NCBI GenBank assembly: GCA_019828565.1
Contig: JAHDYR010000038.1
Span: 698,735-762,734, forward strand
DNA: 64,000 nt
Reading direction: 5' to 3'
Source: Carpediemonas membranifera BICM
Lineage: Eukaryota; Protista; Fornicata
The notes beneath the pieces were generated by a model. That model searched no databases. It saw nothing but the letters and a program-made list of their open reading frames with translations, and was not told the DNA's origin. Both the position numbers and the translations under genes were made by a program. Below, one piece after another: positions 12,464 to 51,115 of the stretch (position 1 is its first letter; the number at the start of each line of letters is the position of its first letter).

Positions 12464-12745
12464 TATGCTAGTAAACTTGTGCTATGTATTGTTGTTAGAA
12501 TCAGGGTGAAAGCCACCCAGGCCTGTCTCATTGAAGAGGGCCAGAGGCTCCATGGCGTGAGCCGACCAGTGCTCATGGTGTATGGGGTATGATAATCGGC
12601 GCGGTAGACTCTGTCGGTGCCTTTGGCTCCAGTCAACTGTCGACTCCAACTGTGGTTTCCCCCCAAATTTTTTTCCCCAACTGACAACATGGGCATCGAA
12701 TGTAGGAGGACAAAGGCAGCGCTGATTGCTGTGCATAGGGGCTCA

Positions 12746-14464
12746 ATGGCTAAAACAAGGGCAATTTCTGGCGATATTCCATCCCTCATCGCACTCGCTT
12801 ACCAACACCACTTCGGTTGTTGCATTCCACGAAGATCTGAGATGTTGACGGCGTTTACGACATATATTCATAATCTCACTGCTAAATACGAGCAACAAAC
12901 CGTCAAAGACATCGAATCTCTCTTATCCGTGATCAACAAAGTTCCTCCTCTTAAAGAGAGGGCGCAAACGTTCCTCGACCGCGCCCGCTCGATCCTCACA
13001 GACGGCCCCCCGCTCTCCATGAACGTCGAGCTCACGGAGGGCGAGGAGCTCCCAGTCGCATTGCACACGCTGAACCAGGGCACGCTGTGGGCGTGTCTGC
13101 TGGGTGGCGGGGCCAACCCCGACCTCGAGGACAGGGTGCTGGAGGAGGCTCAAGTGAAATATCCTTATCAAATCAACATACACATTGGGATTCGCCAAAG
13201 ATTTGCCCCTGAGGCCAAGTGCCTCTGGTTCCTCTGCCGCAAGTTCTTCTTCACGGCGAACATCGCCGAGAAGGACGGCGATACGCATCAGAATGTCAGC
13301 CACCTAAGCTTTTACACTCACCGCATGTACATGGGCCGCCTCTTCATGTTCGACCCCAGGTATCATGCCGCCTTCACCCGAGCCAGGATGCCCAGGGCCC
13401 TCGAGGTTGACACGTGCCCGGTAGCCTTCATAGCCAGGACGCCCAAGGGCCTGTGGGGCTGGGGGGACAACAGCAAGATGCTGCTTGGGGTATACACGCC
13501 AAGTGTCGGCCGTGAACACCGGTTCGAGTCCCCAACCCGCATCACCTTCGACAAGTGCCCCGAGGTCGCCGAGCTCGAGGCCAGTCTGCAACCCTGGGAG
13601 AAGCACAGGATGGTGCGCGACGTTTCAATGACACTCTGGCACACGTTCATACTCACCCCGGCGGGGACCGTTGTCGCAGGCGAGTTCTCTGGCGTTTTCT
13701 ACATTCCGAAAGGAGGTTATACTTCATTCTACTTCCAAGCAGTTCGCGTGCCGGATGGATTTGTCCCAGATCACATTGTCACGCATGGCAAGAACACAAC
13801 GGTTCTCTCCATGGGCGATCGGCAGGCGATAAGTGGGAGTAATGATCATGGCCAGCTGGGGCTCAACAAAGGGAGCTTCAAGCCCGGTTTGTTCGGATTT
13901 GAGGAGATTTCCTTCTCGGTCGATGATGTTCGATTGTCAGGCGCAGGAGTCAATATCTTCTTGAGCGGCGGCAAGCTGCTGTTCGCTGGCCACGTTTCCG
14001 AAATGATCGCCAAGTCGGGCCTGCTGCCTGGGTACAACGTGGGCGACAAGTGCCTCACACCCACCCCTCTCCGGTTCCCCGAGAGGGTCACGAGTATCGC
14101 GGGCGACCTGAATTTATGGCATTTATTAGCGTGGACGGGTGAGGAAAGGACGCACGTGACAAGTTTTGACGGCACTGGTGTGCCAAGTCATTACACGATC
14201 CCGTTCACGGTGACAGCTTTCGAGACTTTTCCCGACTCACACGCTCAGTTCCGCGACACGTCTGGCCGGTGGTTTAGGGTGAAAGGCATTACAGATGGCG
14301 TGGCAAAGATGGAGAAGGCCACGCGGGCGAGCTTTAATAGTGTGGACCTTATTGCGGTCGATATCGCGTGCAGCACCACACAGGCGAAGGACAGAAATGA
14401 TGAGATGCAAAGAGGCAATCACTTCAAGGGGACAAGAATACCGCACATGCGGCAAATGACTTGA
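12746..14464 (+). CDS. Lineage-expanded family protein with degenerate RCC1-like repeats (paralog of 2177..3730)
   Basis: Same conserved core as the 2 kb ORF; 'RTPKGLWGWGDN' and 'SGSNDHGQLGL' RCC1-like motifs; start uncertain. Confidence 0.65.
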   Translation: MAKTRAISGDIPSLIALAYQHHFGCCIPRRSEMLTAFTTYIHNLTAKYEQQTVKDIESLLSVINKVPPLKERAQTFLDRARSILTDGPPLSMNVELTEGEELPVALHTLNQGTLWACLLGGGANPDLEDRVLEEAQVKYPYQINIHIGIRQRFAPEAKCLWFLCRKFFFTANIAEKDGDTHQNVSHLSFYTHRMYMGRLFMFDPRYHAAFTRARMPRALEVDTCPVAFIARTPKGLWGWGDNSKMLLGVYTPSVGREHRFESPTRITFDKCPEVAELEASLQPWEKHRMVRDVSMTLWHTFILTPAGTVVAGEFSGVFYIPKGGYTSFYFQAVRVPDGFVPDHIVTHGKNTTVLSMGDRQAISGSNDHGQLGLNKGSFKPGLFGFEEISFSVDDVRLSGAGVNIFLSGGKLLFAGHVSEMIAKSGLLPGYNVGDKCLTPTPLRFPERVTSIAGDLNLWHLLAWTGEERTHVTSFDGTGVPSHYTIPFTVTAFETFPDSHAQFRDTSGRWFRVKGITDGVAKMEKATRASFNSVDLIAVDIACSTTQAKDRNDEMQRGNHFKGTRIPHMRQMT

Positions 14465-16324
14465 CTCATGCCACATGGGGAGAAGAGCAGCCTGCTGCAG
14501 CCGGGACACTTGGTGTTCTTCTTGACGCAGTTTGGTAGATCAATCACCTGGCGCGGCGCCATCTCGCACTCGCCGCCGTAGTGGGCCATGTGCTCTTCCT
14601 GGCTGGCCACACAGAGCAGGCACTTGTGGCAGAAGTCCTGGCGACACTTTGGACACGTTGACATCTTGCAGCTATCCAGGTCGCCCTCACGAGTTGTCAG
14701 CTCGCCGCACGCCGGGCAGCGGCGGTAGACGGGGACGTCCACGGCGGCGCCTCTGCCGAGCGTGACTAATTCGCACGTGCCGAGGATTTTGTTAGACTCT
14801 AGCAGAGTTGGGATGTCATCTTGCGTAAACCATGTCTTCCTGTCAATGGTGAAGAAAGACGCCGTTTGCCCCGGCACTACTGGGGTCGAATCAATGATGC
14901 CATCCGCCATAGCATCAGCGTTGGTAATGTTGGGCAGGTGGAGCTTGCCTGAGCAGTCGACCACTAGATGCCTGTGGTCGTGTAGGACAACGGGTGTTGA
15001 ACCACTGGGTAAATGATTGCCGAACACGTGGAAGGCGAAGCGGCGGTGCGTCTCGTCGTCCTCGAGCACGGCGCGGAGGGCGTCCTGCACGCCCTGGCTG
15101 TCCGCGGGGAAGCGCAGCGGGGCGAGCACAGCGTCGACCGTGAGCGGGTTGGGGCGCACGAGCAGGGCCCGCAGCTGGGCGGCCGTCAGTGCCCGAATCT
15201 TATCGGCAAAGCATGTATGAGCGGTCAGGCCGTTGTAGATCAGTCCCATATACCTGGCAAAGACACATTCCAGATTCTTACGGTACTCTGCCACATTCCC
15301 CCTGAAATCGTCAAGACTGTCATAAACTTCTTCAATTGGTTTTCTCAGGGCCTTGTCGACCTCGGGCATCAGTGCCCTCAGCTGCACGCGGCCGCCAGTG
15401 AGTGCGACGAACCAGGCGTCGCTTACCATGCCTGCCGGGATGCGGAGCCCGTGGAGCAGCATGAGCTGCAGCAACCGCCCCAAGCCGACGAGGATGGGCT
15501 GGAGCTCATCAATTCGCGAAGACAGTGTATCTAGTGTATCCTTGTTGAACATGAGAGAATCTTCACGGAATATTGGGGCAGAACAGATGTATGACCCAAT
15601 CTCATGTGTCAGGCTGATGTTTGGGAGATCCGAAATGATCTCAGCGATCTTCTCGGCGGGGGAATGCCCAGAAAGCGTGACTGAGTCGACAAAGAAGTCT
15701 GTTGTGCACCATGCAAGCTTAGTAACTACGGCTGCAGACGAAAGGGCGGGACTGTCGCCCTCTACCGTGATATCAATGCTTGGTCTCGAAAACATGCGGA
15801 AACACGCCTGCTCGACATCGGCCTTGAAGTTAAAGGCCCCCGCGAAGTGGTTGTTAGCAGCATGGAGGTCGAACTCGGGGTCAATGTCGCCGAGCTGTCC
15901 GGCGAAGAGGCCGTCGGCCAGGGCGCGGCGGACGGACCAGCGGGCCTCGGGGTGGGTGGCGAGCATGCCGGAGAGCACCTCGCGCAGGGCGTCGGGGACA
16001 GCGACGGTGGCGAGCAGGGCGGTGCAGAGCTGGTCGTCGTTGACGGTCGAAGCTGCTGCGAGGTCGCTAGTGATCAGGCTGAGAAGTCTATGGTTGAAGT
16101 CAAAGTAGTCCGGCGCCATGGACCCGAGCATTGTCAGGCCCGCGTGGTAGACGTCTGCGGCCTGCTGCTCGCGGTGGCTCAGCTTCTTCCCGGCCTTGCG
16201 GGCGGCGATCTCCTCGGGCGCGCTGAAGGCGAGCGTGCCGATGTTCACTCCGGTCGCGGTCGCGTTCACGGCGTCCATGTTCGAGGCCGTCTCGAAGTCG
16301 ACGAGCACGGGGTGGCCCTCGCGC

Positions 16325-16356
<32 letters not shown>

Positions 16357-18765
16357 ACAGACGCCCGCGCTGTGCAGGTCGTGGATCGCGGTGAGCAGGC
16401 CGCGGAGCAGTCTGCGCTGAGTGTCGGGCGAGTCGGCTGGGGCGTCGCGCAGGTGGCGCTCGAGGCGCTCCATGACGATCGCGCCGGTCTTCCTCTCAGG
16501 ATCAGAGAGGTCGACGAGGACGAAGTGCAGCCTGGGCACGGCGGGGCTGTGCGCCATGCGCGACAGGATGCCCGCCTCGCGGTCGCAGAGCTTGCGCTGG
16601 TGCGTGCTGTCGAGCTTGAAGGTCTTGGCGAAGTAGGTCTGGCCGTCGCGGGCCACGATCTGGCACAGCGCTCTGTTCTCGCTGACGGTCGACTCGACGG
16701 CGAAGTCGGACAGCGACAGGTCGGCGCGCATCTCGGGGAGGTCCATGAGGTGGGCCAGCCCCATCTCGCGCAGCTCGGCGAAGAGGCTGGCCGACGGCGC
16801 GGTGATGGCGCCCAGCTCGGGGCACAGGGCGAATAGATGCGGTGTGCAGTCAGCCAACAGCCCTTCTATCTCTGCGATGCGGCGCCTGACTCCAACGAGC
16901 TCAACCTCACTCTCCGCCACACGATCAATCGCCGCCTTTCGCATAGCAGTAATGGCCTCGTCCAGGTGGGCTGCCCGCGTCTTGAGGTGGTAGTAGTCGC
17001 CCCGCTTCTTGCACTGCTGGACTACATCCCGGGCCATCCTGTACTTATCGAGGCTCGCCTCCGCCTCCAACCGGCGTCCGTCAAAATCGGGCGTGCCGAG
17101 CTCCTCTTGGGAGAACTCCGCGAGCTGCTCCTCACACCGGGCTATCTCGAAGTCGAGCCTGCTGCGGCACGCGTGCTGATTACGGCCGCACATGGGGTCG
17201 ACCATGATGTCGCATCTCCTGATATTCTCGTATCTCGGATGGATTCTGATGCCAGGATCATCTTCTGGTGATACGTGAAGGAATGTACAGTTATCATGGA
17301 AACATCCATCGCCCAGAGGGCAGGGCTTTGTGGGGATATTCCAACCATCGGGGAGACTGTGGTCAAAGGTCAGCCTGTGAGTAATATCCTTCATCAAGCC
17401 GCACTGGGGCCCTTCTTGACACTTAGGGAGGTCCAAATGGACGAAGTTGCTCTTGTGGTCTGGATCATCCGACTCTGCGCAGTTTATGCCGAGCGGGCAG
17501 ACATGTCTGAATGAACGACAGTGGGTTGGGTCCTTCCGGGCGGTGCAGAGGTGTGGTCTCGAGCAAAAGGGGTGCGGGACGGGCGGGCATATCGAATGGT
17601 GTCTATATGCCATCGTATGAGCGGGGTCGTCTTCAAGGCCGCAGAAGCCGTCTTCCTCGCATTGTGGGGGTTGGGCGAACGCCCTGTTGTGGATGGCAGA
17701 GAAGTCCAAGCATTGCCCGCCCAGCTTGCACTGGGGCTGGGGGACATGAACGAACATGACGCAGTGCTCGCGGGCGGCAGGGGTGTCACTGCCGTGTAGA
17801 GGGCACTCGAGGCCGTCAGGGCAAGGTGTGGGGTGATAGAAGCACGATAAATGGGCCTGGTCGGCCTGTGCGCATGCCATGCCAAGGCTACAGAGTCGTC
17901 TAAGGCCAAATTTGTGGTCAAGTTTCTTCGACTCGGGCCTCTCAAGCTGTTTCGTGTCGATGATGTCTTTGAACGCGGCAATATCCCTCTCCCAGGGGAG
18001 TGCGATGGTTATGGACTTAAAATGCTGTCGATACAAGGGGAGCAACGATCTGATGACCCAGGCAGTATGGGTGTTTGGATTGCCATGGATCTCGCAGCCG
18101 AAGGCCGAAAGCACGAGGTGTTGCACGCTGTGACGTATCGCGGCTCTGAACATCAGGTGAAGATGCTCAGCAGTCTTCTTAGCGTCCGCTTCGTCCTTGA
18201 TGAAGCAGTTTTGGGTGTCCGACCCGACCAGGACGGTCTCCGGGTACATGGCGGGGGTGGTTGAAATTATCGTGCACGTCACGGGTCGGCACATGAGTCG
18301 GTAGTCATCCCTCATCGCGTGGCGGAAGATTGTGACATTTTCCGTGATAATCGCGTCACAGGGCCATGGATAGGCCGGGAATTCGGACTGGGTGGATCCA
18401 AATTCGGTTGTGCGCTCATCCAGGGCGAACGAAAGTGTGGTGCGGCGCATGATGTCGGCCTCCTGGTTTCGCTCTCCCCGCTCGTATCCCCTACCGACGT
18501 TAATGTCGTCAGCACTGCACAAACAGCCGATGCGCTCCCCAGGGTACATGTCACTGAGCATACTGGTGGCATCCAGGCTGTCCTTCTGGCACAGTGTGAC
18601 TGTGCCGAGCTCAAAGCCCTCTTTGAACGCCGCGAGAGTACCGCCCTTGGTAGTGGCGTCGGCAATGTTGTACGTGTGCGTCTTCATGCAGGCTGACAGG
18701 CTCTCTAGACCTGCAGCAGTCCGATACTCGCCGGCCCGGATGCACCCGAGGGTGTGGGCGACCAC
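14419..18765 (-). CDS. Macrodomain (bacterial-type PARG-like, degenerate) + about 8 PBZ/CCCH zinc fingers + coiled coil + protein kinase + HECT-like + IBR/RING2 fingers; probably the 3' part of a fusion with 18807..20300
   Basis: 'SADDINVGRGYERGERNQEADIMRRTTL' and 'LVLSAFGCEIHGNP' (PARG-type macro); C-x5-C-x6/7-H-x5-H repeats; HRDLKPEN/DFE/APEE kinase; 'VVDCSGKLHLP' HECT C-lobe-like; 'CPACG...CKMSTCPKCRQDFCHKC'. Starts at GTG; frame open back to about 19002. Confidence 0.8.
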
Positions 18766-18806
18766 GCCGGCCCGGTCAGCTACTGAGGGGCATGTTCTTC
18801 TAGCGC

Positions 18807-20300
18807 TTAATACAGCGGGGTAGAAGTCGGTGTGGATCGAGAAGAGGGGCGAGTTCCGGGGAACTTGGAAGGCGTCGAGGACACCCGGGGTGCGCGGACG
18901 AAACGGTTGTCTGGGGGCAGGTTTGAAGTTGATACCTTTACAGATGGGTGGCTGCGGCAGTTGAACGCGTGCAAGCTAGCACCCAGTGTGGGATCTGACG
19001 CATCACTGACGAGATTGCCCCGGTCATCCGAGAACACGGTGCAGGCGGGGTGGGACAGCCTCATCTCGAACGTCTTGGGCACGCCTGTGGTAAGGAAGTG
19101 GAGGAGGAGCGTGGCAAGATCGGAGAGGAAGGCGGGCGAGTCGTCGGACGGCAGGCTGATGTCCGCAGCAGCTGCGGATCGTGAACAGAGCTCGGAAAAC
19201 TCCGCGGTGAACGCCGCGGTCCGACCGATAGCCCATAGTTTCGCAGTCGAGTCATACGACCCGGTAACAAGCATGCAGCTGTTGGGCGAGTACGCCACAC
19301 TCTGCAGACCGCGCGTGTGCCCGCTCAGCGTCTGCACCCGCTGCCAGGTCGTCGTGTCCCAGATGACTGCCGTCCCATCGCCAGACCCAGAGGCCAGAGT
19401 CTTGCCGTCTGGGGCGAATGCGACGGATAAGACCTGGTGCGCGTGGCCTTTGAGCGTTTGCACGCATTGCCAGGTCTTGCTGTGCCAGATGTTGATAGTG
19501 CGGTCAATCGACCCAGAAGCTACAAGCGAACCGTCAGGTGAACACGCGACACTGCGGATATTCCCGACGTGACCCCGTAATTTGTGGTCAAGTCGACCTG
19601 TCGCAACGTCGTACACCCGGAGCACCTGGTCGCCGCCAGTAACCAGCTTCATGGAGTCGGCTGTGAACTCTACTGCATCGAAATAGCACGGAGGCATGCC
19701 TACCTTGACAATGCACTCACTGTGCATCACGTCATGAATATCCCAGACCTCCAGGGGGTGGAGGGCGCTCTTACCAAGAGCAAGCTTCGTCCCGTCTGGG
19801 GAAAACGCGAGAGCTTGTATCCCGCCGTCCTCGATCGCGAGTGAAGTGAGGAGCTCGCCGGTCGGCACGTGATACACATTGATGGGCCCCGAGGACTTAC
19901 ACAGTGCGACCATCGCCCAGTTCTTGGACATGGCGAAACAATGCACACGCGCCCCGTTGTTACATGTCCGTCTGCACTTGCCGGTCGGGTCCCAGAGCTT
20001 GAAGAGAGATTCGCTGTCCTTCATTGACAGATAGATAGGAGTTGTCACGACGGTATCACCGCTCATTGCTGCTACCACGTCGCCCGAATGGCCCTTCAGC
20101 GTCTGCACACAAGAACTGCCGCGCCTCGCGTTCCAAAGGGTGAGCAGACTGTCGACTTCGCTGAGCCCCGAGGCAAAAAGTTCGCCACGATTCATCCAAA
20201 TGACCAAGTTGGGCGTAGTGAGGTACATGCGGAACTCCTTGGGAAGAACCTTGGCCGCTAGGAGGTGGGCGAGGACCCGAGTGAAGTCGGCGACCCCCAT
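18807..20300 (-). CDS. WD40-repeat protein (HET-E-like repeats), N-terminal module of the family; possibly disrupted
   Basis: Repeats such as QTLKGHAHQVLSVAFAPDGKTLASGSGDGTAVIWD; homology to the N-terminus of 21164..26428 continues upstream through an in-frame TGA at 20352-20354. Confidence 0.82.
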   Translation of the reverse strand: MGVADFTRVLAHLLAAKVLPKEFRMYLTTPNLVIWMNRGELFASGLSEVDSLLTLWNARRGSSCVQTLKGHSGDVVAAMSGDTVVTTPIYLSMKDSESLFKLWDPTGKCRRTCNNGARVHCFAMSKNWAMVALCKSSGPINVYHVPTGELLTSLAIEDGGIQALAFSPDGTKLALGKSALHPLEVWDIHDVMHSECIVKVGMPPCYFDAVEFTADSMKLVTGGDQVLRVYDVATGRLDHKLRGHVGNIRSVACSPDGSLVASGSIDRTINIWHSKTWQCVQTLKGHAHQVLSVAFAPDGKTLASGSGDGTAVIWDTTTWQRVQTLSGHTRGLQSVAYSPNSCMLVTGSYDSTAKLWAIGRTAAFTAEFSELCSRSAAAADISLPSDDSPAFLSDLATLLLHFLTTGVPKTFEMRLSHPACTVFSDDRGNLVSDASDPTLGASLHAFNCRSHPSVKVSTSNLPPDNRFVRAPRVSSTPSKFPGTRPSSRSTPTSTPLY

Positions 20301-20725
20301 GGGGGCAGAACCAATGGCTTTCAGGTCGATACTATCACTAGGCGTGATATTTCACATCATTACTTCCTCAATGAGACGATCTGTGTCTCTACAGTCGCTG
20401 CTGCATGAGATACTGGAGAATAACGCACCATTGGGCCGGATAGCTGCATAACCAGACAGAATGCGAGGATGCTGCTTATAAATGCATTACCTCACTAGTA
20501 CAAACCATCTATATGAGCTATGAACACGTAAAAACATACTTTTTGCAGCGCCGCGTGACTGGTGAATCCACAGAACGGGGCTGCATCGCGAGCAAGAGAA
20601 AATTTAGCTTTAGTCATTTAAGACATTTAGCGGGGGAATCACGATGCAGCAAGCCGAGCATGAGTCCATTGTGAGCCATGTCCAGTCGGAATGACTCCAT
20701 GGTCTGGGTGCACAGCATCTTCTGC

Positions 20726-23216
20726 ACCTCAACAACTACAACCGGTCTGGGTTCGACATGCACGTCGAGGACGACGGGACCAAGGGCAAGAACAAGGCCA
20801 AGCGCCAGATACGTGAACAGTAAATGGCCACCTCTTTGTGACACAGAACTGAGTGAGGTCGGGATGGACAGTCCGTGGCGGTTGAGTCATATCATCCCTG
20901 GTCGAGGTTGACAGGCAAGGGTATCGACCGAACGCCCTGGGGCACCGGGAATCCGCAGATAAACGATGAGTGCGGTGCTTGGCCTTCTTGCACCAGGCGT
21001 GCACGCTGGGTCCAGGAACCTCGCGAGGGTGGTGCGGTCGACCCGGCTGCGGTTTGACGGGGAAGGAGGGCAGGGAGAGTAAACGGAGACGGCGACATGG
21101 AGCACGAGCTGGCAGGGTCAAGCTGCTCCGACCGAGCATCCATCGCACTGCTACAACAGACCTTTACTCATTCCACGTCTGGCCGCACCTGCACCTCATG
21201 TGCTGGCACCCGCCGTCCTTGTAGTAGCGCACGCCGCACCCGGGGCAGCGGCGATAGCCCAGTCGGTTCGCCAGCATCTCGTCGTAGTGCTCGCAGCTGC
21301 CGTCGTGGATGACGGGGTCGTCGTGGCCGAGGCAGACTGTGTTCCCGCACCCGCGGCACGCAAGCTGCCTCCGGTTCGCGCTGACCGTTGCCGAGCGATG
21401 GCAGTGGGGGCATGCGAACGTGCGCAGCCTGGCGACGCCCTCGGGCAGGTCGACTGTCTGGCGCGGCGCCATCTCGCACTCGCCGCCGTAGTGGGCCATG
21501 TGCTCTTCCTGGCTGGCCACGCAGAGCAGGCACTTGTGGCAGAAGTCCTGGCCGCACCGGCACGCCGACATCTTGCAGCTGTCCAGGTCGCCCTCGCGTG
21601 TTGTCAGCTCACCGCATGTGGGGCAGCGGCGGATGACGGGGACGTCCACGGCGGCGCCTCTGCCGAGCGTGACCAGGCGGCACGTCTGGAGGATGTCGTT
21701 CTGCTCGACCAGGGCGTCGATCTCGGCCCGCGAGTAGTGCACGCGGCGCGGGATGACGTAGAAGTCGGCTGCCGCGACTGCTGTGGCAGGGGCCGAGTCG
21801 AGCACCGCCTGGCGCATCTGGCCGGCGTCCTCCAGACGAGGGAGGCGGGCGCCCCCCGCGCAGTCGGAGTACACGCGGTGGTCGTCGTGGAGGGTCACGC
21901 CGACGGAGCCGGGCTGGGGGAGCTGGCCGCCGAACACGTGGAAGGCGAAGCGGCGGCGCGTCTCGTCGTCCTCGAGCACGGCGCGGAGGGCGTCCTGCAC
22001 GCCCTGGCTGTCCGCGGGGAAGCGCAGCGGGGCGAGCACAGCGTCGACCGTGAGCGGGTTGGGGCGCACAAGCAGGGCCCGCAGCTGGGCGGCCGTCAGC
22101 GCGAGGACCTTGGCGCTGAAGCGCGTCTTCGCGGCCATGCCGTTGCGGACGATCTGCATGCGCTCGGCGAAGCGGCGTCTCACCTCGTCGTCGCGCGCCT
22201 TGAGGTCGCCGTCGAAGCCCTCGAGCGGGCACGCGGCCGCAGCCTCCGCAACAGACCGCTGCAGCGCCCGGGCGACGATGGGCATCAGCGCTCCCAGGTC
22301 GACGCGGCCGCCCGTGAGCGCGACGAGCCAGGCGTCGCTAACCATGTCCGCGGGCAGGGTGATGCCGTCGAGCAGCATGAGCTGCAGCACGCGGCCGAGC
22401 CCCAGCAGGACCGGGCGCAGGTCGTCGAGCGGCATGCCGAGGGCGTCGGGCGAGAGGACCAGCGTGCCCTCGCGGAAGATGGGCACAGCGAACTCCATGC
22501 CCCCGACGGCCTGGCGGACGGCCACGCGCGGCAGCTCGACGACCAGGTCGGGCAGGGCCTTCGCGGAGTCGTCGCCCGAGAGCGTCGCGGGGATGGCGAA
22601 CAGGTCCTCCTCGCACGCGGCGATGGTGGCCAGGCTCGCCGAAACGGCGTCAGCGAGGGCGATGTCGATCGGCTCCTCGCGGAACATCTGCAGGCGCGCG
22701 CGGTCGATGTCGTCGACGAAGGCGTGGGCGCTCGCGAACCTGCTGCTCGCCGCGTTGAGGTCGACCTCGGGATCCAGCTCGTTGGCCGAGGCGGCGAAGA
22801 GGCCGTCGGCCAGGGCGCGGCGGACGGACCAGCGGGCCTCGGGGTGGGTGGCGAGCATGCCGGAGAGCACCTCGCGCAGGGCGTCGGGGACAGCGACGGT
22901 GGCGAGCAGGGCGGTGCAGAGCTGGTCGTCGTTGACGGTCGAAGCTGCTGCGAGGTCGCTAGTGATCAGGCTGAGAAGTCTATGGTTGAAGTCAAAGTAG
23001 TCCGGCGCCATGGCCCCGAGCATCGTCAGGCCCGCGTGGTAGACGTCTGCGGCCTGCTGCTCGCGGTGGCTCAGCTTCTTCCCGGCCTTGCGGGCGGCGA
23101 TCTCCTCGGGCGCGCTGAAGGCGAGCGTGCCGATGTTCACTCCGGTCGCGGTCGCGTTCACGGCGTCCATGTTCGAGGCCGTCTCGAAGTCGACGAGCAC
23201 GGGGTGGCCCTCGCGC

Positions 23217-23248
<32 letters not shown>

Positions 23249-26200
23249 ACAGACGCCCGCGCTGTGCAGGTCGTGGATCGCGTTGAGCAGGCCGCGGAGC
23301 AGTCTGCGCTGAGTGTCGGGCGAGTCGGCTGGGGCGTCGCGCAGGTGGCGCTCGAGGCGCTCCATGACGATCGCGCCGGTCTTCCTCTCAGGATCAGAGA
23401 GGTCGAGGAGGACGAAGTGCAGCCTGGGCACGGCGGGGCTGTGCGCCATGCGCGACAGGATGCCCGCCTCGCGGTCGCAGAGCTTGCGCTGGTGCGCGCT
23501 GTCGAGCTTGAAGGTCTTGGCGAAGTAGGTCTGGCCGTCGCGGGCCACGATCTGGCACAGCGCTCTGTTCTCGCTGACGGTCGACTCGACGGCGAAGTCG
23601 GACAGCGACAGGTCGGCGCGCATCTCGGGGAGGTCCATGAGGTGGGCCAGCCCCATCTCGCGCAGCTCGGCGAAGAGGCTGGCCGACGGCGCGGCGGACA
23701 CCTTCAGCTCGGGGCAGAGCCGGACGAGCTGCGGCGTGCGGCGGGCCAGGACGGCGTTAATCTCGGCGATGCTGGCGTTCACGGCCTCGAGCTCGGCCGC
23801 GACCTCGGCGGCCTGGGCGTGCCTGCGGCGGCGACGGAGGTAGCTGACATCGTCTTCGAGCTCCTCGGCCTTGCTCTTGAGGTGCTGGTAGTCGCCGAGC
23901 GTCTGGAGCTGCGCAGTGATGGCGTCGGCCTCGGCGAACCCAGCCAGGTGGACCTCAGCCTCGGCGGCCAGGCCAGTCAACCCGCGAATGGTGCGCTCCT
24001 CGGCGCTCGTGTCATCGCCAAGCTCCTTCCGACCGAGGGCCCACTGCCACGTCTCGCGGACGGCCTGCTGGAGGAAGGCGCGGAGCGTGGCGTACCTGGC
24101 CTGCAGCTCGGGCGCGAGGGTGGGGAAGCCGGCGACCTCGTTGTCAGCGGCCTTGAGCACGCGGGCCATCTCGTCGAGCGAGGGGAGAGACTCTGGCTCG
24201 AAGGCGGTGGCGCCGTCGACGATGGCCGAGGCCGCCTGGTAGTCAGCGCTGACAGCTGCGATCGTGGCCTCGAGCGCCTCGACCCCGGCCCTGGCCTGGG
24301 CGATGACCGCCTCGTACTCGGCGATGCGGGTCTCTGGCTGGCGTCTGGCATGGCCGAGTCGGCTGATGAGACCAGCGGGCGACGGGATGGGGCCAACGCC
24401 ATCGTGGGCCGGGATGGCGGCCGAGAGCAGGGGGTGGCCCTCGAGCATGGCGCTGATGTCCGCGGCGCGGTTGGCTTCGGTGAACCGGCCGGTCTGGGGC
24501 GAGGCGCAGAACGAGGCCAGGGTCGCCTTCAGGTCGGACAGCTCAGCTCTGAGCAGCCCCATGTTATGCTCCTGCTCGGCCATGGCTGTCTGAAGCATCA
24601 GCCGGAAGTTCCCATCAGAAAGGATCGCGTCGACCTCGAGGGCATGCCGGTCGGCGCTGAACAGGCCATCGGTCAGAGTGACGGTTGTGGCTGGGTCGGC
24701 GGTGGTGACAGTGAAGCTGCTCGGCACTGCGTGCGATGAGACGTGAGTCACGACCTGCCTCAGCTGGTCAACAGTCGCGTCGATCAGGAAAACGTCCGAG
24801 ACGGCTCCCGAGTAAAGATCGGAGACAACCTGGTCACGCAGGCTGGCGTTGAAGCATCTGACAAGCTTGGCAAGCCCGGCGTCCTCGGAGTCTGTCTTGG
24901 CGAACTTGTTCTCCAGCCAGACTCTGGCGGCGGGGCGGGTCAGCGTCATCGTGAAGGAGCGGGGCAGACCAGTGGCGAGGAAGTGGAGGAGGATGCGAGC
25001 GAGGTCGCAGGGGAGTGCTGCTGAGTCGCCAGGGTCGATGGCGATGTCGGCGTCGGGGGCGACTGGGCTGGAGCAGCGCTGGTTGACGGCCAGGAACTGG
25101 GGGATGCGGGGGAGTGTGCTCCAGAGCCTGACTGTATTGTCGCTGGACCCAGAGACGAGGATAGAGCCGTCTCGGGAGAAGACGACGCTCCTCACCACAT
25201 CACCATGCCCCGAGAGCGTCCTGATCAGTGCCCCGGTCGCGCCCCACTGCTTGATAGTTTTGTCTGCAGACCCAGCCACCAGAGTCCTGCCGTCGGGGGA
25301 GAAGGCGAGGCCAAACACAGAACTGGTGTGCCTGGTGTGCCCAAAGGGCGTGGCCGGCATGGCAAAACCCGCTCTGTTGCCGAATCCCCCGACCTGCGCA
25401 GTCTGCCCGAACGCGGACCTCGGTACATCCCTGCTGTGCCCAGCGAGGGTAATATGGGGAATAAGCTGGCCAGTTGCAGGGTCCCACAACTTGACGGCGT
25501 TATCGCTGCCGGATGCGACGATGGCCCCATCGGGTGACACGGCAATGCTGTAGACTTGTGCGCCATGGTTCATGGTCCTGATGCATGCGCCAGTGGCGGA
25601 GCTCCACTGCTTGATCGTGCTGTCAACACTTCCAGTGTAAATGGTCGAGCCATCAGGGGAGATGGCCACGCCATACACATGATGACCATGCCCTGTGAGT
25701 GTCAGCCTGCACTGCCCTCTCTCGACGTCCCAGACCTTGGCGGTCTTGTCAGCCGATCCGGAGACCAGGGTGCGGCCATCAGACGAGAATGCAAGGCGCC
25801 ACACAAATTCAGTGTGCCCACTGAGTGTCTGGGTCTGCTGGCCTGTGGCTGCGTCCCAGAGCTTGACGAGATTGTCCCGCCCCCCAGACGCGATGGTCGA
25901 CCCGTCCGGCGACACGGCAACGGCGTACACCTCACATTCATGCTTCATGGTCCTGATACACTGACCAGTGGCCGAGTCCCACTGTTTGACGGTGCCATCA
26001 GGTGACGCAGTGATGGTGCCGTCGGGGGAGGTGGCGACACCAAGCACCTGTTTGCCATGCCCTGTCAGTGTCTTAATGCACACACCAGCCATAGGCTCTG
26101 TGGACCGCGTGTTCCATGCTTCGAGCGCGAGCTCAACCGAGCCATCTTCATGGTCGGCCTCGAGTCTGCCATCCACCATCGTGACGGTAACGGCGGGCTC

Positions 26201-26745
26201 AGTGAGCTCCATCGTTAGCGTATCAGGTTCTATGCCCGCGCTGAGCAGGTACTGGACGACCTGCTCGAGGTCCTGGACGGTGATCGGCGTCTCGCCTCGC
26301 TTGCGGACCTGGATGCCCTCGGGGCCGGGGCGCTCGGAGATTGCGGTGCGGATCTGAGCGTCTACTGCTCTGCAGTCGTCGCTGCGTGAGAATGCAGCCT
26401 CGATACGTACCACTGGCTGTGTAATCATGGAATTTGCAGATCAAACGCGTCAGGCGTGCTGTGTGAGAGAATCGCGCTGCAGCCGTGTTGCTGCTGTTGT
26501 AACGCACCATCTGTGTGAGAATAGCTCCGTGATAGCGTACTTTCGGCAGCTTCGCGTCATCGAGAGTTTGTGTTGCTCGAATGTCGCGTGACGAAAATGG
26601 TCTAAACTCCGCTGCCTCCGCAATACCCCGCGCCGTCAGCATTTACCTGCGCCCGGGCGTCCTCCCCCTCATCAGGTCCCCGGCCGTGACCTTGGTCGAC
26701 TTCAGCACGCTCAGCGGCACCCTCCGCCCCGTAGTCGCCATCGCC
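20726..26745 (-). repeat. Copy A of a ~6 kb inverted segmental duplication (partner 45318..51115)
   Basis: Reverse complement matches 45318..51115 almost base for base, from 'ggcgatgg..actacggggcggagg' to 'gtagttgttgaggt'. Confidence 0.95.
21164..26428 (-). CDS. WD40 propeller + coiled coil + protein kinase + HECT-like + IBR/RING2 (RBR) multidomain protein, intact copy (1754 aa)
   Basis: About 7 WD repeats; YFAK/DREAG/HRDLKPEN/DFE/APEE kinase; HECT-like LGRVLQLML...LTAAQLRALL...RRRFAFHVFG...YSDCAGGARLP; terminal RRCPGCG..YYKDGGCQHMRCRCG (RBR RING2 signature). Confidence 0.88.
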
Positions 26746-28634: not shown

Positions 28635-28844
28635 TGGAGTCGTGCCGGCCACACAGCTCGGGCCAACCTCCTCAGTGGTGCGTGTGTCTTGTATTAGTAT
28701 GATTGCTTCGCGCTGACCCGGGAGCTTCGCTCTCAACCGACGCCCCGTATTAATAGAGAGCAATCAACGGGAATTGAGGGATAATATGGCCATAAACGGA
28801 TCGATAATCGGGGATAATAGGGTTAATTTACTCATATACGGCAC

Positions 28845-45317: not shown

Positions 45318-48300
45318 GGCGATGGACTACGGGGCGGAGGGTGCCGCTGAGCGTGCTGAAGTCGACCAAGGTCACGGCCGGGGACCTGATGAGGGGGAGG
45401 ACGCCCGGGCGCAGGTAAATGCTGACGGCGCGGGGTGTTGCGGAGGCAGCGGAGTTTAGACCATTTTCGTCACGCGACATTCGAGCAACACACAAACTCT
45501 CGATGACGCGAAGCTGCCGAAAGTACGCTATCCCGGAGCTATTCTCACACAGATGGTGCGTTACAACAGCAGCAACACGGCTGCAGCGCGATTCTCTCAC
45601 ACAGCACGCCTGACGCGTTTGATCTGCAAATTCCATGATTACACAGCCAGTGGTACGTATCGAGGCTGCATTCTCACGCAGCGACGACTGCAGAGCAGTA
45701 GACGCTCAGATCCGCACCGCAATCTCCGAGCGCCCCGGCCCCGAGGGCATCCAGGTCCGCAAGCGAGGCGAGACGCCGATCACCGTCCAGGACCTCGAGC
45801 AGGTCGTCCAGTACCTGCTCAGCGCGGGCATAGAACCTGATACGCTAACGATGGAGCTCACTGAGCCCGCCGTTACCGTCACGATGGTGGATGGCAGACT
45901 CGAGGCCGACCATGAAGATGGATCGGTTGAGCTCGCGCTCGAAGCGTGGAACACGCGGTTCACAGAGCCTATGGCTGGTATGTGCCTTAAGACACTGACA
46001 GGGCATGGCAAACAGGTGCTTGGTGTCGCCACCTCCCCCGACGGCACCATCATCACTGCATCACCTGACGGCACCGTCAAGCAGTGGGACTCGGCCACTG
46101 GTCAGTGTATCAGGACCATGACGCATGGAGGCCAAGTGTACGCCGTTGCCGTGTCGCCGGACGGGTCGACCATCGCGTCTGGGGGGCGGGACAATCTCGT
46201 CAAGCTCTGGGACGCAGCCACAGGCCAGCAGACCCAGACACTCAGTGGGCACACTGGATTTGTGTGGCGCCTTGCATTCTCGTCTGATGGCCGCACCCTG
46301 GTCTCCGGATCGGATGACACGACCGCCAAGGTCTGGGACGTCGAGAGAGGGCAGTGCAGGCTGACACTCACAGGGCATGGCCATCATGTGCGTGGCGTGG
46401 CCATCTCCCCTGATGGCTCGACCATTTACACTGGAAGTATTGACAGCACGATCAAGCAGTGGAGCTCCGCCACTGGCGCATGCATCAGGACCATGAACCA
46501 TGGCGCACAAGTCTACAGCATTGCCGTGTCACCCGATGGGGCCATCGTCGCATCAGGTGGCAGCGATGGTTCCGTCAAGTTCTGGGACACCGCAACTGGC
46601 CAGCTGACTCGGACCCTTGATGGGCACACCAATTTTGTGTGCAGCCTCGCCTTCTCCCCCGACGGCAGGACTCTGGCGTCTGGGTCTGCAGACAAGACCA
46701 TCAAGCAGTGGGACGTTGCCACCGGGGCACTGATCAGGACGCTCTCGGGGCACGATGGCACGGTGCAGAGCGTCGCATTCTCCAGAGCCAACTCTACCAT
46801 CGTGTCTGGGTCTGACGATAGAACTGCCAAGGTCTGGAGCACACTCCCCCGCATCCCCCAGTTCCTGGCCACCGTCAACCAGCGCTGCTCCAGCCCAGTT
46901 GCCCCCGACGCAGACATCGCCATCGACCCTGGCGACTCAGCAGCACTCACCTGCGATCTCGCTCGCATCCTCCTCCACTTCCTCGCCACTGGTCTGCCCC
47001 GCTCCTTCACGATGACGCTGACCCACCCCGCCGCCAGAGTCTGGCTGGAGAACAAGTTCGCCGAGACAGACTCCGAGGACGCCGGGCTTGCCAAGATTAT
47101 CAGAAGCTTCAACGCCAGCCTGCGTGACCAGGTTGTCTCCGATCTTTGCTCGGGAGCCGTCTCGGACGTTTTCCTGATCGACGCGACTGTTGACCAGCTG
47201 AGGCAGGTCGTGACTCACGTCTCATCGCACGCAGTGCCGAGCAGCTTCACTGTCACCACCGCCGACCCAGCCACAACCGTCACTCTGACCGATGGCCTGT
47301 TCAGCGCCGACCGGCATGCCCTCGAGGTCGACGCGATCCTTTCTGATGGGAACTTCCGGCTGATGCTTCAGACAGCCATGGCCGAGCAGGAGCATAACAT
47401 GGGGCTGCTCAGAGCTGAGCTGTCCGACCTAAAGGCGACCCTGGCCTCGTTCTGCGCCTCGCCCCAGACCGGCCGGTTCACCGAAGCCAACCGCGCCGCG
47501 GACATCAGCGCCATGCTCGAGGGCCACCCCCTGCTCTCGGCCGCCATCCCGGCCCACGATGGCGTTGGCCCCATCCCGTCGCCCGCTGGTCTCATCAGCC
47601 GACTCGGCCATGCCAGACGCCAGCCAGAGACCCGCATCGCCGAGTACGAGGCGGTCATCGCCCAGGCCAGGGCCGGGGTCGAGGCGCTCGAGGCCACGAT
47701 CGCAGCTGTCAGCGCTGACTACCAGGCGGCCTCGGCCATCGTCGACGGCGCCACCGCCTTCGAGCCAGTCTCTCCCCTCGCTCGACGAGATGGCCCGCGT
47801 GCTCAAGGCCGCTGACAACGAGGTCGTCGGCTTCCCCACCCTCGCGCCCGAGCTGCAGGCCAGGTACGCCACGCTCCGCGCCTTCCTCCAGCAGGCCGTC
47901 CGCGAGACGTGGCAGTGGGCCCTCGGTCGGAAGGAGCTTGGCGATGACACGAGCGCCGAGGAGCGCACCATTCGCGAGTTGACTGGCCTGGCCGCCGAGG
48001 CTGAGGTCCACGTGGCTGGGTTCGCCGAGGCCGACGCCATCACTGCGCAGCTCCAGACGCTCGGCGACTACCAGCACCTCAAGAGCAAGGCCGAGGAGCT
48101 CGAAGACGATGTCAGCTACCTCCGTCGCCGCCGCAGGCACGCCCAGGCCGCCGAGGTCGCGGCCGAGCTCGAGGCCGTGAACGCCAGCATCGCCGAGATT
48201 AACGCCGTCCTGGCCCGCCGCACGCCGCAGCTCGTCCGGCTCTGCCCCGAGCTGAAGGTGTCCGCCGCGCCGTCGGCCAGCCTCTTCGCCGAGCTGCGCG

Positions 48301-48710
48301 AGATGGGGCTGGCCCACCTCATGGACCTCCCCGAGATGCGCGCCGACCAGTCGCTGTCCGACTTCGCCGTCGAGTCGACCGTCAGCGAGAACAGAGCGCT
48401 GTGCCAGATCGTGGCCCGCGACGGCCAGACCTACTTCGCCAAGACATTCAAGCTCGACAGCGCGCACCAGCGCAAGCTCTGTGACCGCGAGGCGGGCATC
48501 CTGTCGCGCATGGCGCACAGCCCCGCCGTGCCCAGGCTGCACTTCGTCCTCCTCGACCTCTCTGATCATGAGAGGAAGACCGGCGCGATCGTCATGGAGC
48601 GCCTCGAGCGCCACCTGCGCGACGCCCCAGCCGACTCGCCCGACACTCAGCGCAGACTGCTCCGCGGCCTGCTCACCGCGATCCACGACCTGCACAGCGC
48701 GGGCGTCTGT

Positions 48711-48742
<32 letters not shown>

Positions 48743-51115
48743 GCGCGAGGGCCACCCCGTGCTCGTCGACTTCGAGACGGCCTCGAACATGGACGCCGTG
48801 AACGCGACCGCGACCGGAGTGAACATCGGCACGCTCGCCTTCAGCGCGCCCGAGGAGATCGCCGCCCGCAAGGCCGGGAAGAAGCTGAGCCACCGCGAGC
48901 AGCAGGCCGCAGACGTCTACCACGCGGGCCTGACGACGCTCGGGGCCATGGCGCCGGACTACTTTGACTTCAACCATAGACTTCTCAGCCTGATCACTAG
49001 CGACCTCGCAGCAGCTTCGACCGTCAACGACGACCAGCTCTGCACCGCCCTGCTCGCCGCCGTCGCCGTCCCCGACGCCCTGCGCGAGGTGCTCTCCGGC
49101 ATGCTCGCCACCCACCCCGAGGCCCGCTGGTCCGTCCGCCGCGCCCTGGCCGACGGCCTCTTCACCGCCTCGGCCAACGAGCTGGACCCCGAGGTCGACC
49201 TCAACGCGGCGAGCAGCAGGTTCGCGAGCGCCCACGCCTTCGTCGACGACATCGACCGCGCGCGTCTGCAGATGTTCCGCGAGGAGCCGATCGACATCGC
49301 CCTCGCTGACGACGTTTCGGCGAGCCTGGCCAGCATCGCCGCGTGCGAGGAGGACCTGTTCGCCATCCCCGCGACGCTCTCGGGCGACGACTCCGCGAAG
49401 GCCCTGCCCGACCTGGTCGTCGAGCTGCGCCCGGTCCTGCTGGGGCTCGGCCGCGTGCTGCAGCTCATGCTGCTCGACGGCATCACCCTGCCCGCGGACA
49501 TGGTTAGCGACGCCTGGCTCGTCGCGCTCACGGGCGGCCGCGTCGACCTGGGAGCGCTGATGCCCATCGTCGCCCGGGCGCTGCAGCGGTCTGTTGCGGA
49601 GGCTGCGGCCGCGTGCCCGCTCGAGGGCTTCGAGGGCGACCTCAAGGCGCGCGGCGACGAGGTGAGACGCCGCTTCGCCGAGCGCATGCAGATCGTCCGC
49701 AACGGCATGGCCGCGAAGACGCGCTTCAGCGCCAAGGTCCTCGCGCTGACGGCCGCCCAGCTGCGGGCCCTGCTTGTGCGCCCCAACCCGCTCACGGTCG
49801 CCGCCGTGCTCGCCCCGCTGCGCTTCCCCGCGGACAGCCAGGGCGTGCAGGACGCCCTCCGCGCCGTGCTCGAGGACGACGAGACGCGCCGCCGCTTCGC
49901 CTTCCACGTGTTCGGCGGCCAGCTCCCCCAGCCCGCCTCCGTCGGCGTGACCCTCCACGACGACCACCGCGTGTACGCCGACTGCGCGGGCGGCGCCCAC
50001 CTCCCTCGTCTGGAGGACGCCGACCAGATGCGCCAGGCGGTGCTCGACTCGGCCCCTGCCACAGCAGTCGCGGCAGCCGACTTCTACGTCATCCCGCGCC
50101 GCGTGCCCTACTCGCGGGCCGAGATCGACACCCTGGCCGAGCAGAACGACATCCTCCAGACGTGCCGCCTGGTCACGCTCGGCAGAGGCGCCGCCGTGGA
50201 CGTCCCCGTCATCCGCCGCTGCCCCACATGCGGCGAGCTGACAACGCGCGAGGGCGACCTGGACAGCTGCAAGATGTCGGCGTGCCCGTGCGGCCAGGAC
50301 TTCTGCCACAAGTGCCTGCTCTGTGTGGCCAGCCAGGAAGAGCACATGGCCCACTACGGCGGCGAGTGCGAGATGGCGCCGCGCCAGACAGTCGACCTGC
50401 CCGAGGGCGTCGCCAGGCTGCGCACGTTCGCGTGCCCCCACTGCCATCGCTCGGCCACGGTCAGCGCGAACCGGAGGCAGCTTGCGTGCCGCGGGTGCGG
50501 GAACACAGTCTGCCTCGGCCACGACGACCCCGTCATCCACGACGGCAGCTGCGAGCACTACGACGAGATGCTGGCGAACCGACTGGGCTATCGCCGCTGC
50601 CCCGGGTGCGGCGTGCGCTACTACAAGGACGGCGGGTGCCAGCACATGAGGTGCAGGTGCGGCCATACGTGGAATGAGTAAAGGTCTGTTGTAGCAGTGC
50701 GATGGATGCTCGGAGCAGCTTGACCCTGCCAGCTCGTGCTCCATGTCGCCGTCTCCGTTTACTCTCCCTGCCCTCCTTCCCCGTCAAACCGCAGCCGGGT
50801 CGACCGCACCACCCTCGCGAGGTTCCTGGACCCAGCGTGCACGCCTGGTTCAAGAAGGCCAAGCACCGCACTCATCGTTTATCTGCGGATTCCCGGTGCC
50901 CCAGGGCGTTCGGTCGATACCCTTGCCTGTCAACCTCGACCAGGGATGATATGACTCAACCGCCACGGACTGTCCATCCCGACCTCACTCAGTTCTGTGT
51001 CACAAAGAGGTGGCCATTTACTGTTCACGTATCTGGCGCTTGGCCTTGTTCTTGCCCTTGGTCCCGTCGTCCTCGACGTGCATGTCGAACCCAGACCGGT
51101 TGTAGTTGTTGAGGT
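45318..51115 (+). repeat. Copy B of the inverted duplication; includes the last ~30 codons of the Bub1/Mad3-like gene
   Basis: Matches the reverse complement of 20726..26745. Confidence 0.95.
45635..50681 (+). pseudogene. Frameshifted paralog of the WD40-kinase-HECT-RBR gene
   Basis: 2-nt deletion near 47767 (gagccagtctc vs gagccagagtctc) splits it into ORFs 45635..47815 and 47559..50681; also a 114-bp in-frame deletion at about 49425. The frameshift could be an assembly error. Confidence 0.75.

Follow-up and report, generated by a model that had tools for sequence, protein, structure and literature searches.

The free-living metamonad Carpediemonas membranifera, an anaerobic flagellate, encodes a family of giant modular proteins in which, most often, a WD40 propeller is joined to a protein kinase, a divergent HECT-like domain and zinc fingers resembling those of RBR ubiquitin ligases. 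Three of its loci, A (14419-20300), B (21164-26428) and C (45635-50681), lie in the stretch analysed here, a window of 64,000 nucleotides of nuclear DNA on contig 26 (698735-762734) of an assembly of 24.2 Mb in 69 contigs; positions below are those of the window unless a contig is named. The three loci have in common a block consisting of a helical spacer, the kinase, a domain of about 340 residues and the zinc fingers. A first-pass annotation of this DNA had proposed such an effector block, and every sequence feature that it named was found in place. We consider it probable, though well short of certain, that these lineage-specific and expanded enzymes form a diversified repertoire for recognition, coupled to a single effector that phosphorylates and ubiquitinates. 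HECT and RBR proteins are the two main classes of ubiquitin (E3) ligase that bear ubiquitin on a cysteine of their own, and they are regarded as separate inventions; here modules of both kinds stand in one protein together with a kinase.

The effector block of locus B

Locus B is a single intact open reading frame (ORF) of 1754 residues, as established from the ORF list, its translation and Pfam. From the N terminus it encodes a module of about 55 residues, a WD40 propeller, two more of the 55-residue modules, the helical spacer, the kinase, the HECT-like domain, an IBR finger, an IBR-like finger and half of a RING2. All of its features are on the minus strand:

21164..26428, minus strand: locus B, single intact ORF, 1754 residues
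26114-26296 and 24629-25042, minus strand: modules of about 55 residues, one before and two after the propeller
25094..26098, minus strand: WD40 propeller, residues 111-445, seven blades (Pfam WD40, E 3.8e-72)
~25333-25440, minus strand: Gly/Phe-rich insertion in a WD40 blade, 36 codons, about residues 330-365
23639..24628, minus strand: helical spacer, residues 601-930, Ala/Glu-rich
22784..23596, minus strand: protein kinase domain, residues 945-1215 (Pfam Pkinase, E 4e-20, profile positions 21-260)
21785..22756, minus strand: predicted divergent internal HECT domain, residues 1225-1548, N- and C-lobe
21860..21862, minus strand: codon of Cys1523, candidate HECT thioester cysteine in the motif YSDCAGGARLP, aligned by hhalign to the canonical AHTC cysteine
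21479..21625, minus strand: zinc finger 1, IBR type, residues 1602-1650 (Pfam IBR, 27.1 bits)
21293..21412, minus strand: zinc finger 2, residues 1673-1712, a CxxC...CxxC ribbon extended by a second Cys/His site, IBR-like
21167..21247, minus strand: half RING2 (Rcat), residues 1728-1754, ligands C1728, C1731, C1746 and C1748, candidate catalytic C1741 and H1743

The domain behind the kinase is, as judged from its modelled structure and from profile alignment, a divergent HECT fold that lies far outside the Pfam model, which bears out its earlier description as HECT-like. An AlphaFold2 (AF2) model of B residues 1225-1565, built on a shallow alignment of 17 paralogs, has a mean predicted local distance difference test (pLDDT) score of 81.7 and a predicted template modelling score of 0.76. 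When this model was compared with the PDB by Foldseek, the best 50 matches listed were all HECT domains, with about 380 aligned columns and a best E of 5.9e-8. VIA-align (Z about 14) superposes model residues 3-324 on residues 544-913 of WWP1, covering both lobes; the N-lobe alone fits HECT structures with a root-mean-square deviation of about 4 A over about 210 residues, and the offset from Cys1523 to the end of the domain is that of C890 in WWP1. A fold search of the ESM Atlas and a language-model search returned HECT clusters only. The hhalign comparison with four canonical Carpediemonas HECT domains (probability 80%, E 1.4e-5, 197 columns) matches the N-lobe motif LGRVLQLMLLDGI to the corresponding canonical motif and the C-lobe motif F..FGG.LP to F..FVTG...P, and it places Cys1523 on the catalytic cysteine of the canonical AHTC. 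The concern that the post-kinase region might carry no HECT fold at all is accordingly answered by Foldseek, VIA-align and hhalign alike.

Within the family, the LP motif that follows the cysteine and the framework of the C-lobe are conserved. The cysteine itself, described at the outset as retained, is indeed present in A, B and C; across the family it is kept in 12 of the 17 long paralogs and in P0019, a relative from a second species described below, and is gone in 4-5 divergent members. The domain is internal: in 15 of the 17 long members it is followed by 140-230 residues of zinc fingers, or by a RhoGEF domain, and the two members in which it is terminal both lack the cysteine. With the canonical HECT ligases (NEDD4/WWP/Smurf, HUWE1, E6AP, UBR5) the family shares the predicted bilobal fold, a cysteine in a C-lobe loop followed by an LP motif, and N-lobe G-x-x-L-x-L and 'DL...P' motifs that align by hhalign; it differs from them in being about 12-14% identical, invisible to Pfam, internal and fused to a kinase. 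A genome-wide scan with PF00632 finds just four genes, all of them canonical HECT genes outside this family, and surveys of HECT proteins that depend on Pfam would miss whole families of this sort.

The zinc fingers point to the RBR ligases. The Pfam IBR profile (PF01485, cut-off 24.3 bits) scores 27.1 bits in B, 28.8 in C and 19.2 in A, the last being below the cut-off. Finger 1 gives a weak alignment to the IBR of ARIH1, and its ligand cysteines are invariant in the paralog alignment; finger 2 has a Zn-ribbon-type Pfam match together with RBR-like fold matches. Finger 3, which contains the motif KDGGCQHM, aligns with the RING2 of ARIH1 over 24 residues (phmmer, E 0.0038) such that C1741 and H1743 correspond to C357 and H359, and its Pfam IBR_1 score of 18.3 bits is below the cut-off. 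An AF2 model of B residues 1561-1754 (pLDDT 71), likewise predicted from a shallow paralog alignment, matched RBR ligases in 48 of the 49 Foldseek rows listed (HOIL-1, RNF216, Parkin, HOIP, HHARI), at 22-28% identity and E values from 8e-4 to 0.1, with one listed row at E <= 0.001.

The half-length RING2 has no continuation beyond the stop codon in any frame. A 17-nt GT...AG stretch was considered as an intron that might restore the rest and was rejected as too short. The end is taken to be real because the stop is conserved in C, in the sister copy of B (L031) and in P0019. Within Carpediemonas, the half RING2 with KDGGCQHM is confined to the B-type copies of contig 26, so that its assignment to the two WD40-headed copies B and C stands as a property of that subfamily. 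The broader claim of IBR and RING2 fingers stands in part: IBR scores exceed the cut-off in B and C and the Rcat alignment is present, whereas RING1 and half of RING2 are absent. In comparison with the RBR ligases (ARIH1/HHARI, Parkin, HOIL-1, RNF216, HOIP), the family shares the IBR and the RING2 active-site pattern CP.C......K.GGC.HM.C with its Cys and His, and differs in having no RING1, an extra IBR-like finger and a RING2 with a single zinc site, RING2 being missing altogether from most paralogs.

The Pfam match of the kinase (PF00069) has an E of about 4e-20 in A, B and C, starts at profile position 21 with the Gly-loop region unmatched, and scores 72.8 bits against a cut-off of 31.7. 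Locus B has K971, E987, HRDLKPEN at 1061-1068 (D1063, N1068), DFE at 1080-1082 (D1080) and APE at 1106-1108, and there is no GxGxxG ahead of K971; these positions match exactly the initial description of a kinase with Lys, alphaC Glu and HRDLKPEN kept, DFE in place of DFG and no Gly-rich loop. The nearest PDB matches are scattered over Rad53, PDK1, TTK and CaMKK (1e-10 to 1e-8), and for this reason no kinase subfamily can be named. The helical spacer in front of the kinase has weak matches to coiled-coil families (DUF3450, E 1.3e-4; HAP1_N), a composition consistent with them, and no P-loop.

Family expansion, sequence exchange and a relative in a second species

A six-frame search of the genome with the C-terminal half of B recovered 82 matching pieces, which group into about 53 loci. 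About 17 of these have open frames of 1365-2321 residues, and the others are truncated, split between frames or interrupted by stops. Contig 26 holds eight loci, six of which (A, B, C and three more) lie within 713-822 kb of the contig and two of which are fragments elsewhere; contig 2 also holds eight, and a further five, all fragments, are on contig 54, three of which fall inside a stretch of about 6 kb. The family is therefore not of the small and invariant kind that would have told against the first-pass annotation: it is large, variable and in many places broken. Four near-identical finger-region fragments on contig 54 (G000:C54:795879-796383, 845625-846129, 848554-849064 and 851492-851997) each contain an in-frame TGA; three stand within about 6 kb and the fourth about 50 kb away, and the arrangement resembles a repeated pseudogene piece. 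A further fragment, of the HECT C-lobe, occupies residues 305-397 of P0021 (KAG9394562.1, 412 residues), a protein annotated as a chromodomain protein, and may have been captured beside a retroelement-type gene.

The N-terminal head is a WD40 domain in 14 of the 17 long members. Three members depart from this: A carries a macrodomain, with a WD40 ORF immediately upstream, another has a weak Ras-like segment, and the third has no recognisable head. 'Swappable sensors', as the family had been characterised, is thus an overstatement, and variation extends to the C terminus as well: the majority of members end after the first site of finger 2, and in two divergent loci, L041 (G000:C7:324500-334499) and L044 (G000:C13:960800-968500), a RhoGEF (DH) domain replaces the fingers after a HECT-like domain that lacks the aligned cysteine.

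The two halves of these genes have evolved in different ways. In the same gene pairs, synonymous divergence (dS) is 1-2, that is saturated, in the WD40 head and 0.03-0.3 in the kinase and HECT-like domain. A and B are 98-100% identical in DNA over about 840 nt of the kinase, but in the HECT N-lobe identity drops all at once to 54-61%, and other patches stand at 77-88%; the corresponding gene-conversion tract from B occupies about 15970-16805 in A. Among B, L031 and C the differences are patchy, and synonymous and nonsynonymous changes rise jointly. From the contrast in dS, the abrupt drop in identity between A and B and the patchiness of the differences, it is concluded at the DNA level that ectopic recombination or gene conversion homogenises the effector half, the WD40 heads being anciently diverged.

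Domain-wide ratios of nonsynonymous to synonymous divergence (dN/dS, omega) are 0.3-0.9 and nowhere convincingly above 1; across the WD40 domain as a whole they are 0.3-0.6, with dS saturated. A position-specific comparison was made over the seven blades of five close paralogs, the hotspots being set a priori from general knowledge of WD40 proteins (positions +3 and +5 from the GH histidine, together with the position preceding the turn Asp). Every one of the 21 hotspot columns is variable, compared with 72 of 193 other blade codons (p 6e-9); among three nearly identical copies the counts are 10 of 21 and 26 of 193 (p 5e-4). The proportion of nonsynonymous differences (pN) at hotspots is 0.55-0.60 and that of synonymous differences (pS) in the framework is 0.23-0.26, a ratio of 2.2-2.4 (p 1e-5 to 4e-4) that reaches 5.2 in the youngest pair, and omega of the framework codons is 0.33-0.45. 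These values point to selection that diversifies the face with which the propeller is predicted to bind. The likeness to HET-E WD repeats noted at first therefore holds for variability focused on that face, as far as this rough surface test goes, and does not extend to homogenisation of the HNWD kind: Tandem Repeats Finder detected no array within the WD40 regions, which argues against DNA-level homogenisation of the repeats. Apart from substitutions, the 36-codon FG-rich insertion in a blade of B is present in the sister copy L031 and absent from C, L032 and L035.

A profile search of 1.84 billion representative proteins (E <= 0.001) returned 20 proteins. Sources are known for 10 of the 20 and for four more, and six short or fragmentary matches were left aside; the convincing proteins whose source was checked are all from Carpediemonas except P0019 and P0026. 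The residual weak matches are repetitive mollusc and trypanosome proteins, each with 7-12 short stretches, and word-based protein searches with the C-terminal halves of B and P0019 gave Carpediemonas proteins or the query only. P0019 comes from assembly GCA_002919055.1, where it lies on a compact contig of eukaryotic character with a GC content of about 58%, and its organism is identified as a relative of Carpediemonas because the adjoining TrmB is 71% identical to that of Carpediemonas. B is its best match in the genome, at 27% identity over about 1060 residues. P0019 contains, in order, a helical region, a kinase (HRDLKPEN, DYE), a HECT-like domain with the cysteine, an IBR, an IBR-like finger and a half RING2 with Cys-x-His, and the two proteins end at the same point (F-N-Y-stop in P0019, W-N-E-stop in B). 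The shared order and shared end indicate that the truncated RING2 is real, that the B-type architecture is ancestral, and that the effector block has been selected as a unit.

Two further observations concern these searches. In GCA_002919055.1, a 371-residue ORF (L052:2-1117 and L053) ends 68 nt before the kinase-HECT-RBR ORF of P0026, a paralogue of P0019; a unit of about 57 residues occurs twice in it, along with a coiled-coil-like tail. Pfam finds no domain in this 371-residue ORF, which does not resemble the heads of the Carpediemonas members either, and it may be the N-terminal part of the P0026 gene. A TrmB-like gene is found at both G000:C6:1427152-1427986 and G000:C42:51258-52077, with equal scores and the same two-piece, intron-like structure, which suggests a duplicated segment or an uncollapsed haplotype.

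Proposed function and competing readings

In the working scheme that we favour, the variable WD40 face would capture a protein or ligand and the helical spacer would bring molecules together; the kinase would mark the bound target, or activate the ligase part by autophosphorylation. The HECT cysteine, Cys1523, would take ubiquitin or a ubiquitin-like protein from an E2 enzyme and hand it to the target, either directly or through the Rcat cysteine, Cys1741. Such a family could reveal whether the two cysteines work together, whether HECT domains function away from the C terminus, and whether a one-zinc half RING2 suffices for catalysis. It also offers a clear case of a predicted binding face that diversifies while gene conversion keeps the effector uniform, in a free-living metamonad.

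A number of observations weigh against this scheme. Pfam HECT (PF00632) has no match at E <= 1 in the post-kinase region of A, B or C, hidden Markov model searches of PDB sequences with two family profiles gave a single chance match, to an isoprenoid synthase, and the HECT assignment leans on a model from 17 paralogs and on the hhalign probability of 80%. The domain is internal, in contrast to canonical HECT domains, which are C-terminal and whose tail serves ligation. As to the fingers, Pfam has no RING-type match, the segment linking the HECT-like domain to the IBR contains no Cys/His cluster that could stand for RING1, and the ORF of B stops six residues past the fourth ligand of the first zinc site of RING2, so that the second site is missing. 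The missing Gly-rich loop and the DFE in place of DFG leave the activity of the predicted kinase uncertain, and the divergent members that have lost the HECT cysteine mostly have degraded kinase motifs too. For the spacer, the 'coiled coil' of the first-pass annotation has only composition and weak family matches in its favour. Finally, the selection test is a rough one, made with uncorrected proportions on non-independent pairs of a recombining family.

Much of this would be expected if the ligase-like parts were catalytically dead scaffolds and the proteins acted as WD40-targeted kinases or adaptors that bind ubiquitin, E2s or partners. A HECT-like domain too divergent for Pfam and internal rather than C-terminal, a missing RING1, a half-length RING2 that most paralogs have lost, and several paralogs in which the domain is kept and the cysteine is not, all fit such a role, and there is precedent in the divergent, reportedly non-functional HECT domains of G2E3 and G2E3-like families (PMC3673628). 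Against it, the HECT cysteine and the Rcat Cys-x-His are both kept in the B-type copies and in the 27%-identical P0019, the LP motif after the cysteine and the C-lobe framework are conserved, and the zinc ligands are invariant; we hold dead scaffolds to be an unlikely, if serious, alternative to a phosphorylation-plus-ubiquitination effector. Far less credible is that the family consists for the most part of DNA in decay or amplified selfishly, without organismal function, its long ORFs being recent duplicates not yet broken. About two thirds of the loci are fragmentary, frameshifted or interrupted by stops, C is broken and A may be, overall omega is fairly high (0.3-0.9), and one fragment sits inside the chromodomain protein P0021. 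About 17 open frames of 1365-2321 residues persist nonetheless, in a GC-rich genome, the framework omega of 0.33-0.45 is below 1, the architecture is shared with a second species at 27% identity, and substitutions are spread unevenly and concentrate on the binding face, all of which makes decay very improbable.

An innate-immune or non-self surveillance role, in which WD40 heads would sense molecules of microbes, viruses or altered self and the kinase/E3 block would trigger defence or death, is in our estimate possible but rather doubtful. It would account for the lineage-specific expansion, the clustering and the many pseudogene fragments, for sensor halves that are deeply diverged beside homogenised effector halves, and for the nonsynonymous excess at the predicted ligand face; the regular SPDG...SGS.D.T.K.WD repeats recall HET-E, and the PARG-type macrodomain of one member belongs to a class that is common in conflict systems. 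Yet the family has no NACHT, NB-ARC or P-loop oligomerisation module, no homogenisation of the repeats in DNA and no known death or defence effector domain, related protists have large diversifying kinase families (such as the Giardia NEK kinases) without a shown immune role, and the pattern fits equally any family that tracks fast-changing partners.

Regular WD40 repeats, variation on the top face, expansion, clustering, pseudogenes and ectopic recombination are common to the family and the fungal HNWD/HET-E genes. However, the Carpediemonas proteins lack both a NACHT NTPase and a death domain, HET or otherwise, their sensor is N-terminal and the fungal one C-terminal, and their repeats, unlike those of HNWD genes, are not homogenised in DNA. 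NACHT and NB-ARC have no Pfam match in any segment and B has no Walker A motif; the NLR- or HNWD-like interpretation given to the loci at first is consequently supported only in part, and these are not NLR, STAND or HNWD proteins. A kinase-gated relay between two cysteines, from Cys1523 to the one-zinc Rcat Cys1741, in dozens of enzymes whose diversifying WD40 faces would form a P-loop-free repertoire for non-self or damage, is an improbable combination; if true, eukaryotic immune receptors and E3 ligases would each gain a previously undescribed kind.

To our knowledge, and as far as limited searches go, no protein has been described in which HECT and RBR modules are combined, in which an internal HECT domain is followed by IBR/RING2 fingers, or in which RING2 has a single zinc site, and a limited literature search found no publication joining Carpediemonas and HECT. 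Kinases are known to work with cysteine-dependent ligases, as in PINK1-Parkin, and MYCBP2 is an RCR ligase with a two-cysteine relay; in Carpediemonas kinase and ligase would be fused, and a HECT-to-Rcat relay is hypothetical. KEG has a RING-kinase-ankyrin-HERC2-like organisation. Like it, PhWD2/UPPER brings an E3-type domain, a kinase and a repeat propeller together in one polypeptide; both differ from the Carpediemonas family in their reversed domain order, their adaptor-type RING and their small, conserved families. PhWD2/UPPER is a RING-kinase-WD40 protein of plants (PMC10286513).

The combination of a kinase with HECT is not entirely new, because GL-Bikonta proteins of Naegleria gruberi and Ectocarpus siliculosus carry a divergent HECT and kinase domains of unknown function (Grau-Bove et al. 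2013, PMC3673628). G2E3 likewise has a divergent HECT domain with zinc fingers, and in it the latter carry the ligase activity (PMC3673628). In both groups HECT is detectable by Pfam, and no WD40 head, IBR/RING2 or large expansion is reported; none was found by the profile search of 1.84 billion proteins, and the comparison is by description only. The initial claim that one polypeptide unites a kinase with two kinds of thioester-forming ligase thus survives to the extent that a HECT fold and IBR/RING2 fingers are each present with a candidate cysteine, and has to be qualified in that the RBR part is incomplete and kinase plus HECT has a precedent.

Loci A and C and the surrounding genes

The remaining features of the window loci are as follows:

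18807..20300, minus strand: locus A, first ORF, 497 residues, a 55-residue module, WD40 (Pfam, E 1.7e-40) and a second 55-residue module
18960-20300, minus strand: 55-residue modules of A
14419..18765, minus strand: locus A, second ORF, 1448 residues, PARG-type macrodomain, helical spacer, kinase, HECT-like domain, IBR and truncated ribbon
18322-18753, minus strand: PARG-type macrodomain of A (PF10021 PARG_cat_microb, 28.5 bits, cut-off 23.5)
15913-16653, minus strand: kinase of A (Pkinase, E 4.6e-20)
14827-15864, minus strand: HECT-like domain of A, cysteine codon 14953-14955
14422-14841, minus strand: IBR and truncated ribbon of A (IBR 17.7-19.2 bits, below the cut-off), no half RING2
45635..50681, plus strand: locus C, two overlapping ORFs, 45635..47815 and 47559..50681

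In A, the macrodomain, of the microbial PARG catalytic type, opens the second ORF in the place where the other paralogs have their third 55-residue module; no PBZ finger was detected by Pfam at E <= 0.01. The two ORFs of A are in different frames, and their open frames overlap by ~170 nt in a low-complexity linker; the split may come from a frameshift or from an assembly error, or the two ORFs may be separate genes. In the upstream WD40 ORF the 55-residue module stands on either side of the propeller. This module follows the pattern L..vv..l...g.P..Ft..lt.Pa..V and has no family match in Pfam.

The DNA of C matches that of B at about 99% identity outside blades 5-7 of the WD40 domain, where identity is 87-89%. 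Compared with B, C has lost 2 nt near 47766, a deletion that splits its ORF, and an in-frame deletion of 114 nt at 49424/49425 removes 38 residues of the HECT N-lobe, invariant positions among them; the HECT cysteine and the half RING2 are kept. Judged by these lesions, C is probably a pseudogene, with the proviso that the frameshifts in A and C could be assembly errors.

A and B are flanked by an ORF for a weak RCC1-like propeller protein (12617-14464, plus strand) and by a 706-residue ORF without a Pfam family (26643-28763, minus strand), neither of which belongs to the family. The genes of the window are long uninterrupted ORFs, densely packed on both strands, and the neighbours of the three loci are ordinary eukaryotic genes, including CFAP65/74-like, MORN, EF-1 beta, Mcl1 and hybrid-cluster protein genes.

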